A stretch of DNA of 63,644 nt, filler included, from Olpidium bornovanus S191 (lineage: Eukaryota > Fungi > Olpidiomycota): NCBI GenBank assembly GCA_017911155.1. It is 28 parts of 28 records of this genome, joined end to end, with 100 filler letters (N's around TTAATTAATTAA, not from the genome) between each part and the next. Parts side by side here need not be neighbours in the genome. Positions count along the whole stretch, not along the records: positions 37,753 to 41,373 come from JAEFCI010006819.1; 27 more parts are not named here. The stretch is one strand, 5' to 3'. Under the pieces are notes generated by a model, which did no database searches, had not been told where the DNA came from, and worked only from the letters and a program-made list of their open reading frames with translations. Below, one piece after another: positions 37,653-41,157 of the stretch. Made by a program: the position numbers and the translations under genes. Each line of letters begins with the position of its first letter. Position 1 is the first letter of the stretch.

Positions 37653-37843
37653 NNNNNNNNNNNNNNNNNNNNNNNNNNNNNNNNNNNNNNNNNNNNTTAA
37701 TTAATTAANNNNNNNNNNNNNNNNNNNNNNNNNNNNNNNNNNNNNNNNNNNNACATGCACTTCCCGGTAACAGATTGCGCCCGGCCAAGATACGTCAACT
37801 CATCGCCCTCCGGCCATAATAAGAAAGCGATTCGCAAACTTAC

Positions 37844-40800
37844 CATTGCTCTTCGAAGCTTGCCGTTTGCGGAGGCCAACCGGTCGACCACCATCACTAA
37901 CATAGGGTGCGTAAAAGCCCTAGCGTGAGGCGAGAGCCAATTAGATTGTAGCAACGGTAAATGTCCTCGGTGTTTGCAACGGCACTTGCCATTGAAAGTA
38001 TCGAGCAATTTCAACTGGATGACGGTTCGTATCCAAAACTGTGGGCAGCCATCCCTGTGTAAGACTCGCATAACTGACCGTACAGGCAAGATTGATGTAG
38101 GCGAGTGCCGCATGCAGCCGCCGGGTTTGATCATTGTCGCTTCGGAAATACCCGCATAGGCACACCGAGAAAACAACCGCTGAAAAAGAAAGTTAAATTT
38201 ATCGGCACTTTAATCGAGACATCGTAATATTCAGAGGCATATAGGCAAAATGAAGCCGACATACCAAATGCGGTAATCGAGCTGATGTACCAGGGGTCGC
38301 TCCGGTCAAAATCAGGGACCTGCAACCCTGCCGACAACCAAAATTGACTGTTGCGCAGGCCGAACAGCGCCAGGCCCGCAACCAACCATCCTGCGAACAT
38401 GCTACTTTGGAGCTTCGACAGGCTGTCCGAGAACTCGAATCCATCAGACAGCAACGAGTGGGTGGAGCCGAAATTGTTGACCCAGCTGAGAACGGAGGCT
38501 GGCCTCCAGACGTGCGGTGGCAAGCTCCTCTGCTGAACGCCGGGGTTCTGTGCGGGACGGTGAGCACCGTTCCACTCGCGGAGATGGGCACTCTCGTGAA
38601 GATGATTGTGCATGTGCAGTTTGTTGAAGGTCTTGAGGCGGGCCACGCGGGATGCGGCGCGAACGGGGTCAAACCGCGAGCTTTCCACGAAAGCCACGAC
38701 GTCTTCGCTCGAGTCGCCCAAGCAGCACCAGTCCCCGTCCTGGTCCAGGTAAGCGAGCAGGAAGTGGGCCGGATCGTACTTGTGCGCGCACCCGCGGAAA
38801 AGCTGCGCGAACCGGTCGCGGATGGACTGGATCGCCCTCGGCTCGTTCAGCAGTTCCATCATCGGCAAGAAAGCCAACCTGATCTCCCCCATGTGTTCGC
38901 ATTTCACGCGGAGGACCGTCGGGTCCCACTTGATCGCAAACGGATACCGCCTCGTCGGGACGCTCGCCCTTGCCAGGTTGTCGAAGGAGGAATGGACGGC
39001 GGCTGGCAGGTCTTTCTCGGCCGCGGGCGCGGCGCGCTCTTCCGCAGCTCGAACCTCCGGCGAGTGCTTCGCGCCGGCGGCCGCCGCTCTCCCGGACGGC
39101 TCGGCGGCGGCGAGCCTGTTGACAAACCTGGGCTCGTCCGCCTTCAGCGACGGCATGGATTTGGCCTTCCGCCCCTGGCCGACGTCCTCTTCATTTTTCC
39201 GCTCGTTCAGGACGTGCTCGCTCTTGTTCAACCCGCGCAGGCTTGGTCTCCCGCCGCCAGGCGGCGTCGGTAGGGAGATCGAAATGCGCTTTTTGGGCGC
39301 CCGGCGCGGTTCGGCGTCGTTGTCCGACGCTGGAGGGGACGCCCGGGAACTCGGGTTTGCGGAGAAAATGGAAAAGCGGCTGGTGCGATCAGTGGCAGAA
39401 CCGTCTTCCGCGACGGCAGAGCCCGGCTGGCTATCCCGGTTGATCGAACCGGAGGATCTGGTAGGGGCGTCTGAGACGGTGGAAAGCAGCGAGCCCACCA
39501 CGGAGGAGCGGTGCTCCGAACGTAGGACACTACCGATGCTCGACGTTATGCTACGGTCGGGAAGCAGTGATGTAATAGAAAAGCCCTTGGACGGATCAAA
39601 TTGCTTGCGGGACGAAGCCGCCGACTCGACCTCCGAATCTGCGTTGCGCGCCGGCCCGCAGGCCGCCGGGCTGGAAGCGTGGCCGGCCGGATGAACGTCA
39701 GCGCGGTCGAGCACCGTTACGGACGCTCTACGGATTTCCTTGGGAACCGGCGGAGCTGCCTGAGGACGGGCCGCATTCACGCCTCCCGCCGCCGGCGCTG
39801 TTGAAGGCTCGGTCGCGTCCGGGGCAGGGTGAACCAGGGTTCTGGCGAGCTCCGCGTTCGTCGATTGGCCTCGTTCTGGCTTTTGGCCAGGAACAATCTT
39901 CCCGTTCGTCAACGCTTCCGCAGCGGACGTGATTTGTGCGCCCGTCGGCGCGGAAGTCGGAGGCAGGTTGGATCCGCGGTGTTGCGCGAGTCCTGCGACG
40001 AGCGCATTGGTAGCGGCGAAGGACTCCGTAACCAGGGGGTAGTTGAGCGAGCCGAACACGTCGACGGCCTTGCCGCCCAGATCGCCGCCGTCGGCTGCCA
40101 CGGAGCCGCGGGCGTTCCCGGCGAATCCTGCAGAAGGGCCCAAAGTTTCGACGGCGGACGACGCCAGGGCCGAGTACGGTGTCGAGCCCCGGGTTTGTTC
40201 TTGCGCGCGGCGTCCGGCGTCCGGCTGAGGAGACGGGCGGCCGCCGGGAGTCCACAGATTCGGCTGGGACGTCAACGGAGCCGGGGTGGCGAAACCGTGC
40301 GTCGGCGGCGGCGGCGGCGGCGGCGGCTGCTCCTCCTTCGTGTGGGAGACCAGCGCAGACCCTCGCAGATACCCCGGCGCCGGCTCACGGCCGGCGCGCG
40401 CCAATTGGCTACGATCAGGGTCGTCCCGGGCCGGCGAACGCAGCGGCGACCGGCCGGCGTCCTCAGCGGCCGGCGACCGCGGCAAAGAGCGGACGTCGCC
40501 CGGCGGAGCAAAATTGCTAAACTGTCCGGCGCTGCGGATTCCCAACGCCAGGCCCCGTATCCTCGGTGAAGGGCTTGACACCCTGTGCAGCGGGCTGAGA
40601 GGTGCCTTGACAAGGGCGCCCCTGTCGGCGGCGGCTTTGCTCGCCGGGTCCGGCGAGCGGTCGTCGAGCGCTTTGCGCGATTTGCCGTGGTCGCCTTCCT
40701 CGGGGGGCGGTGCCGGCTCCGACGGGGCCGCCGCTGCAGCCGCTCTTTCGGCGGAACTGGCGGGGGAGTTCGCGGGCACCGCGGGCTGCGCTTCGGCTGC

Positions 40801-41157
40801 GCCGCTCACGAGCCGTCGAGCGCCGCCGGTGGCTCCGTCGGCCGTCGATCCGACCTTGTAAACGTAAGACGGCGAGGAACTCGCCGGAGCGGCGGCGGCC
40901 GGCGGGCCCGCAAGAGGCTTGCCGATGATCCCGGTGATCCCCGCGGCGTCGGCCGTTCCCTCCGGCCTGCCCCTCGGAGCAAACGACGACGCCCGGGGGA
41001 CGGCGGACCCCGAACCCGGCTCATCCCTCGCGGCGGTTGTTGCGCCCGGCCGGCGATGCAGATCGGGCCGCTCCAGGAACGCCGTCGGCGCCGAATCGGC
41101 GGCGAACAGAGGCTCCTGGCGGCTCTGGCCGAAGGCGCCCATCGACGTGTACTCCAT
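37844..41157 (-). CDS. Enzyme-rhodopsin-like protein (CyclOp/RGC family) with long N-terminal extension and PB1-like domain; exons 41157-38265, 38179-37990, 37919-37844; 3' truncated
   Basis: Spliced TM region: SKLQSSMFAGWLVAGLALFG...DRSDPWYISSITAFAVVFSVCLCGYFRSDNDQTRRLHAALAYINLACTVSYASLTQGWLPTVLDTNRHPVEIARYFQWAFTHPMLVMVV. It aligns, from memory, with Blastocladiella CyclOp (DIWY...GARNPEKKAL...VNIIAFSSY...TPTIEGTLSNPVEPARYLEWIATCPVLILLI). PB1-like segment: VLRVKCEHMGEIRL...YLDQDGDWCCLGDSSED. Confidence 0.85.

Follow-up and report, generated by a model that had tools for sequence, protein, structure and literature searches.

An expressed, spliced gene of Olpidium bornovanus encodes the predicted start of a microbial opsin behind a long arm with a PB1-like domain

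Results

A masked opsin gene

The window analysed here is a stretch of 63,644 nucleotides joined from 28 records of the Olpidium bornovanus S191 genome, and its positions 37753-41373 are the entire JAEFCI010006819.1, a 3,621-bp contig of the binned assembly GCA_017911155.1, which carries one gene on the minus strand. This opsin gene is real and expressed, has at least four exons and encodes a membrane protein of at least 1,063 residues, in which a long N-terminal arm with a PB1-like domain precedes a region that, once spliced, is by its sequence the start of a type-I (microbial) opsin, with a likeness far above chance. The opsin is masked in the public record by a mis-spliced model (wrong donor, GC-AG intron taken as coding) and by the contig break, and the one deposited protein, BJ554DRAFT_136, is a 1,086 aa 'hypothetical, partial' product. 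The sample consisted of non-axenic zoospores washed from cucumber roots, and the assembly (29 Mb in 13,695 contigs) was drawn by tetranucleotide binning out of a 187-Mb raw assembly (PMC7865070). An earlier reading of the window, made without database searches (the sequence-only reading), had proposed a hidden enzyme rhodopsin of the CyclOp/RGC (rhodopsin guanylyl cyclase) kind on this contig, and its claims are taken up below.

The gene model, in the order of transcription, is as follows:

41158..41217, minus strand: 5' untranslated leader; RNA contigs extend to 41203-41217, with the next ATG downstream at 41157
38265..41157, minus strand: exon 1, 964 codons plus 1 base, with the disordered region, PB1-like domain, extra hydrophobic helix TM0 and first half of helix A
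38180..38264, minus strand: intron 1, 85 nt, GTATGT...TTTCAG; joint 38179/38265 in runs X1, X2 and X18
37990..38179, minus strand: exon 2, with the end of helix A, AB loop, helix B, BC loop and start of helix C (...PVEIARYFQ; the following W is split by the junction)
37920..37989, minus strand: intron 2, 70 nt, GC-AG (GCAAGT...CTAG); joint 37918/37989, with 2 ambiguous letters, in X2 and X18
37844..37919, minus strand: exon 3, with the remainder of helix C and the CD loop (AFTHPMLVMVVDRLASANGKLRRAM)
37760..37843, minus strand: intron 3, 84 nt, GTAAGT...GGGAAG; X1, X2 and X18 all exit the contig at 37844
37753..37759, minus strand: first 7 nt of exon 4; the transcript goes on past the contig (CMSAVATTTR..., at least 759 nt in X18 record 7)

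Intron 3, and with it the end of the contig 7 nt into exon 4, is placed because the loose ends of the RNA contigs start with TGCATGT, the last 7 bases of the contig. The unspliced open reading frame (ORF) is 1008 aa long (38131..41157, minus strand), and the joined exons 1, 2 and 3 give 1,053 codons with zero stops, containing the peptide ...DPWYISSITAFAVVFSV...LPTVLDTNRHPVEIARYFQWAFTHPMLVMVVD.... The sequence-only reading had given this 1008-aa ORF, the GTATGT donor at 38264 and the acceptor AG ending at 38180 with exact coordinates, its GC-AG intron is the GCAAGT...CTAG of 37989..37920, and the spliced peptide that it quoted is recovered exactly by joining the exons. At 70-85 nt the introns are short; they have donors of the fungal type (GTAAGT/GTATGT), and their branch sites are CTAAT-like. 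GC content at third codon positions (GC3) is higher than at first and second positions (GC1 and GC2) in eight of nine blocks of the ORF frame, the exception being codons 401-500 (GC3 0.66, GC1 0.71), a pattern which fits coding sequence. Upstream of the transcript start, 41240-41373 holds long C-runs (C12, C8, C7), and 41262-41373 is without RNA contig cover.

RNA evidence for splicing and continuity

Splicing was checked by aligning RNA-derived contigs of independent public runs (coded X1, X2 and X18) to the contig. Record 13 of X2 carries the joints of both intron 1 and intron 2 in a single RNA contig, which reaches into exon 1 to 39445, and record 7 of X18 carries exons 3, 2 and 1 in a single RNA contig up to 40293, unbroken from 38265 to 40293. 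Both junctions predicted by the sequence-only reading are thus present in X2 and X18, and that of intron 1 also in X1. The X1 RNA contig has introns 1 and 3 spliced and intron 2 kept, with a 5-nt deletion at 37976; the retention represents either an isoform of the weak GC donor or a strain variant, and read-through of this transcript would stop at 37941, after helix B. Past 37844 the three runs continue into 282, 399 and 759 nt of unmatched sequence.

Other RNA contigs cover the gene to 41203-41217. Because the RNA contigs link directly to 40293, and beyond it through overlapping or near-abutting contigs, the N-terminal ORF, the PB1-like region and the opsin exons share one reading frame and one set of transcript contigs. 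The sequence-only reading had allowed that the PB1 exon and the transmembrane exons might belong to different mRNAs; the RNA contigs instead join the transmembrane exons to the exon 1 that holds the PB1-like region, and its N-terminus of about 900 aa is roughly 915 aa in the same frame and transcript as the opsin. Positions 40294-40343 are a (CCG)n run encoding eight prolines, where every short-read RNA contig breaks, and which was left out of the mapping as a repeat.

The nearly complete spliced gene occurs in runs of two organism labels (A and E) from five studies, and in X18, which has no study code, whilst runs labelled B-D and root metagenomes hold only ~0.06-0.07 of the gene's sampled words. 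The word depth of the gene is 1240 in X18 (2012) vs. 2-8 in the other runs. This distribution suggests that X18 may be an Olpidium zoospore library, and that the organism is common in such samples.

Helices A to C resemble a type-I opsin

We built a rhodopsin profile from a degenerate RYxDWxxTTPL scan of prokaryotic genomes, which returned 120 loci, 102 of them with rhodopsin-sized ORFs that were aligned. The spliced tail of the Olpidium protein matches this profile at 34.3 bits (E 5.6e-13 for one sequence) in a single collinear alignment over profile positions 23-111, vs. a best score of 7.2 among 2,000 shuffles. Scored in parts, helix C alone reaches 20.5 bits (best of 2,000 shuffles 15.0), whilst TM0, helix A and helix B alone reach 5.4 bits, a score exceeded by two of 2,000 shuffles (best 7.3). 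The sequence-only reading had proposed a hidden opsin start with an extra N-terminal helix, and both parts of that claim agree with the profile score and with a TM0 ahead of helix A. The signature of helix C is located as follows:

37904..38003 (exonic 37990-38003 and 37904-37919), minus strand: helix C signature RYFQWAFTHP, formed only once intron 2 is removed

The motif thus arises solely across the RNA-confirmed GC-AG junction, and it presents the R-Y-x-x-W-x-x-T-x-P helix C signature of the type-I rhodopsin superfamily. In bacteriorhodopsin numbering R1024 corresponds to R82, Q1027 to D85, W1028 to W86, T1031 to T89, H1032 to T90 and P1033 to P91. By the profile alignment R82, W86, T89, P91, L93 and Y57 are kept, whereas D85 is changed to Gln, T90 to His and D96 to Val. 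Exon 2 alone (about 62-63 aa) has just two matches among 177,635 solved-structure sequences, 7cj3 and 7d7q, both the rhodopsin domain of the Salpingoeca Rh-PDE, at E 0.35 and in register over helix B, the BC loop and the initial RY of helix C. In further searches, Pfam and NCBIfam on the short unspliced pieces returned no rhodopsin family, exon 2 was unrecognised by Atlas features, and phmmer against the PDB gave chance matches only for the exon 1 tail and none for exon 3.

Two candidate explanations were rejected. A chance ORF or chance motif is ruled out by the RNA junctions together with the shuffle controls, and a proton pump of the bacteriorhodopsin type is ruled out, the equivalents of D85 and D96 both being absent.

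Why the annotation missed the opsin

The deposited BJ554DRAFT_136 is reproduced exactly by one 41-nt intron (38220..38180, donor GTCTCG), which leaves exon 2 one base off frame, reads the GC-AG intron 2 as coding and yields neither helix B nor helix C; the deposited reading regains the true frame in exon 3 because 70 = 1 modulo 3. Against the rhodopsin profile the tail of the NCBI model scores -0.5 bits and the unspliced read-through tail -1.2 bits (best of 2,000 shuffles 6.6 for each). Proteome-based surveys overlooked the opsin because the deposited model translates exon 2 out of frame.

N-terminal arm, PB1-like domain and topology

Three features of the protein precede helix A:

38953..41157, minus strand: Ala/Ser/Pro/Gly/Arg-rich region, residues 1 to ~735 (A 17%, S 12.5%, P 12%; Pro8 run)
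38674..38910, minus strand: PB1-like domain, residues 750-828 (Pfam PF00564 match and Atlas PB1 clusters)
38317..38409, minus strand: TM0, extra hydrophobic helix, residues ~917-947, upstream of the rhodopsin-aligned helix A (hydropathy peak 1.09)

Residues 1 to ~735 are predicted to be disordered, and zero Pfam or NCBIfam families matched there. Sites of the basophilic kinase type (PKA/PKG) lie within this arm, RRAS at residue 476 (39718-39729) and KKRIS at residue 623 (39277-39291), which would be of interest if the receptor feeds a cyclic-nucleotide pathway.

The PB1-like domain matches PF00564 at E 0.034 when the whole ORF is searched, and at 20.9 bits (E 3.5e-4, profile positions 3-70 of 84) when the domain is searched alone, where PF00564 is the best and essentially the sole family match. 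By the protein-language-model features of Atlas, PB1 clusters are the top 32 of 100 matches (score 0.90, 169 shared features), the other matches including small ubiquitin-like or N-terminal domains (CIDE-N, TDP-43_N and the Par3 N-terminus). A Lys in beta1 (LRVKCEH) and an acidic OPCA-like motif (AYLDQDGDWCCLGDSSED) can be made out by eye in this segment, and judged by the known PB1 consensus the domain would be of type A/B, for which head-to-tail assembly is possible. Directly after the domain, positions 38584-38616 (residues 848-858) encode the His-rich HMHNHLHESAH, a candidate linker that could bind metal or sense pH.

Hydropathy has four peaks, at residues 917-947 (TM0), 954-976 (helix A), 986-1008 (helix B) and 1022-1043 (helix C). 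Of the loops, RSDNDQTRR and SANGKLRR are basic and predicted to face the cytoplasm, and the TM0-A loop PDFDRSDP is acidic and predicted to lie outside, so that the loop charges agree with the positive-inside rule. Enzyme rhodopsins with eight transmembrane helices (8-TM) have an extra N-terminal helix and a cytoplasmic N-terminus; in the same way TM0 would put the 915-residue N-terminus of the Olpidium protein in the cytoplasm, where a PB1 domain belongs.

The downstream half

The 759 nt past exon 3 in X18, ~253 codons, fit helices D-G plus ~110 residues, which is less than a linker and a complete class III cyclase would take, and the X18 RNA contig may end early, before the end of the transcript. 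Searches for this half gave no matches to an exact 30-mer of exon 4 in metagenome contigs, nothing confirmed in a protein-guided metagenome scan, and only the NCBI contig itself in exact-product look-ups.

Discussion

A non-pumping sensory opsin and its rivals

We favour, at slightly better than even probability, a non-pumping sensory opsin that is held in clusters, or bound to a PB1 partner, in the zoospore by its arm and PB1 domain, and whose chromophore sits in an unusual environment. The protein would probably be a retinal photoreceptor that does not pump protons, because the D85 acceptor and the D96 donor are both absent. The unusual environment would stem from a Gln at the counterion and a His beside the pocket, and for want of the counterion the spectrum would be unusual or the Schiff base deprotonated. 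Gln at this site has a precedent in the native CcNeoR3 (PMC10622942). Through its PB1 domain the receptor could assemble head-to-tail with itself or dock to a second PB1 protein, and so be clustered or set in position in the zoospore, whilst the disordered arm may be regulatory or a phosphorylation substrate. The output would come from a C-terminal domain encoded beyond the contig or from a partner recruited by PB1.

Several results weigh against this reading. Helices D-G lie past the end of the contig, and with them the Schiff-base Lys of helix G (K216 in bacteriorhodopsin), the D212-type counterion and any effector; the opening 10 residues of helix D, read from 30 nt of transcript (CMSAVATTTR), are not canonical-looking. 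Gln at the D85 site and His at T90 are atypical, and since the profile was gathered through the helix C motif that motif is over-weighted and the score is partly motif-driven. An exhaustive phmmer search of exon 2 (63 residues) against 1.84 billion representative proteins gave 0 matches at E ≤ 1e-3, and word-based homologue searches with the region from PB1 to helix A, at two query lengths, returned its own entry or nothing. The hydropathy of TM0 is modest (1.09). The PB1 match of 20.9 bits falls below the Pfam gathering score of 23.6, so that the PB1-like domain of the sequence-only reading gains a family match that stays sub-threshold; a single-sequence AlphaFold2 model of the region was unusable (pLDDT 44.5, element order beta-beta-alpha-beta-beta-alpha) and its Foldseek matches were noise. 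Lastly, the taxonomic assignment rests on the binning of a non-axenic sample (PMC7865070).

Some of the same results would also suit an opsin-derived protein that does not bind retinal, its Lys lost or its pocket degraded, much as in the fungal opsin-related proteins or the colourless NeoR-like proteins of the Rhizophydiales. Rather than sensing light, it would anchor the PB1 arm in the membrane or act as its scaffold; we think this unlikely, but worth serious weight. The Gln at the primary counterion, the His at T90, the atypical start of helix D and the want of a significant relative of exon 2 among known rhodopsins in the phmmer search are all in keeping with it, as is the life of the organism as a parasite in soil and roots. 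Natural opsin modules that have lost pocket residues and colour are described by Broser et al. (PMC10622942). Yet the colourless NeoR-like proteins lost W86 (PMC10622942), which is kept in Olpidium along with the other visible pocket residues (the R82, T89, P91, L93 and Y57 equivalents), and several independent runs contain the correctly spliced transcript, all of which argues against this rival.

A rhodopsin guanylyl cyclase of the CyclOp/RGC type, or a NeoR-like partner subunit, with its cyclase on the missing downstream part, was the family placement of the sequence-only reading, and we regard it as improbable. TM0 and a cytoplasmic N-terminus are arranged as in 8-TM enzyme rhodopsins, an enzyme rhodopsin is the sole solved-structure match, the PV(x)3RY spacing resembles that of the Rh-PDE segment, and the transcript runs on for at least 253 codons. 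RGCs are moreover the photoreceptors of zoosporic fungi (PMC9616733, PMC10622942), and some NeoRs have Gln at the first counterion position, ci1 (PMC10622942). Nevertheless fungal RGCs would be expected in the library of 1.84 billion proteins, where none matched exon 2 at E ≤ 1e-3, and among solved structures Rh-PDE matches only at E 0.35; the PVExARYLEW..TCP motif named by the sequence-only reading is not kept, Olpidium having QW..THP, with Gln for Glu and THP for TCP, rather than EW..TCP; the second counterion position, ci2, is Thr rather than the NeoR Asp; and the 759 nt downstream would cover helices D-G and little beyond a linker. Galindo et al. did not find the GC1 cyclase or the BeCNG1 channel in this assembly, which is fragmentary (PMC9616733). 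CyclOp/RGC membership is thus not shown, whilst TM0, a predicted cytoplasmic N-terminus and the marginal match to Rh-PDE make an 8-TM enzyme-type working mode a reasonable lead. From the light-sensor architecture of the sequence-only reading, the Ala/Ser/Pro-rich region, PB1-like domain, TM0 and opsin start in one frame are supported, and the family membership is not. A separate scan of viral contigs (IMG/VR) for RYxEWxxTCP gave six matches (L002-L007) in ORFs of 18-110 aa, which are due to chance and are no viral channelrhodopsins.

A separate question is the origin of the contig. A genuine gene of some other eukaryote, present in the non-axenic root material or zoospore wash, could have entered the Olpidium bin through its composition, which in our judgement is the least probable of these alternatives. 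In its favour, the contigs were binned from a metagenome of zoospores off cucumber roots (PMC7865070), the contig holds one orphan gene and no taxonomic anchor, and the gene is present in runs under several other organism labels. On the other side stand the 70-85 nt introns with fungal-type donors and CTAAT-like branch sites, the word depth of 1240 in what is possibly an Olpidium zoospore library (X18), and an occurrence in root-associated runs that fits Olpidium ecology.

In a more far-reaching reading, the protein would represent a new class of 8-TM rhodopsin, a 'scaffold rhodopsin', in which the signalling or assembly module is a giant cytoplasmic N-terminal arm with a polymerising PB1 domain rather than a C-terminal enzyme, and clusters or recruits partners in a light-dependent manner. 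It would occur in that zoosporic lineage which stands nearest to the terrestrial fungi and which had been taken to be without rhodopsin-based sensing through loss; we offer this as a speculative and rather doubtful proposal.

Implications for light sensing in zoosporic fungi

Working from the same assembly, Galindo et al. 2022 scored Olpidium as 'NF' for CyclOp, the rhodopsin domain, the GC1 cyclase and the BeCNG1 channel (PMC9616733), and deduced that the loss of rhodopsin-based light sensing by zoospores preceded the Olpidiomycota and the terrestrial fungi (PMC9616733). Our search of the literature for rhodopsins in Olpidium found this one paper, which reports their absence (PMC9616733). At least the opsin module survives in Olpidium, a lineage scored as being without opsins, and if retinal is bound the timing of the loss of rhodopsin sensing needs revisiting. 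More generally, absence calls from the proteomes of fragmented assemblies overlook spliced membrane receptors.

The architecture of arm, PB1-like domain, TM0 and opsin is, as far as we searched, previously undescribed; the sequence-only reading had known of no PB1-rhodopsin fusion, and our full-text search likewise returned no paper in which 'PB1 domain' and 'microbial rhodopsin' occur together. The arrangement suggests how a photoreceptor might be positioned or oligomerised, and an opsin that naturally has no counterion and carries a His by the retinal pocket is of interest for its spectrum and for optogenetics.

Comparison with known systems

The nearest solved structure, the Rh-PDE of Salpingoeca rosetta (7cj3/7d7q), is the sole such match of exon 2, with ~30% identity over 54 residues from helix B to the RY of helix C, and shares the 8-TM logic of an extra N-terminal helix, which is established for that family. 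It differs in that the match is marginal (E 0.35), the counterion site of Olpidium is Gln, no enzyme domain is seen on the contig, and the Olpidium protein carries an arm of ~915 aa with a PB1-like domain, of which we found no description for Rh-PDE.

BeGC1/CyclOp, RGC1/2 and NeoR, from zoosporic fungi, likewise have a type-I opsin preceded by an N-terminal extension in the cytoplasm, but exon 2 has no significant similarity to them at E ≤ 1e-3, and the Olpidium QW..THP differs from the EW..TCP motif that the sequence-only reading gives for CyclOp/RGC. The counterion triad of NeoR is Glu at ci1, Asp at ci2 and Glu at ci3 (PMC10622942), whereas ci2 in Olpidium is Thr; its ci1 is Gln as in CcNeoR3, which in its native form absorbs near 410 nm and whose heterodimers are still active (PMC10622942).

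Bacteriorhodopsin and xanthorhodopsin-like prokaryotic and haloarchaeal rhodopsins, of the Pfam Bac_rhodopsin superfamily, share with the Olpidium protein the collinear profile match over helices A-D (34.3 bits), whilst Olpidium has Gln at D85, Val at D96, an extra TM0, a giant N-terminus and a spliced eukaryotic gene. Finally, the Olpidium domain resembles those of the PB1 scaffolds p62, Par6/aPKC, Bem1/Cdc24 and NoxR in the OPCA-like motif and beta1 Lys recognised by eye, and is unlike them in scoring below the cut-off and in being fused to a membrane opsin.

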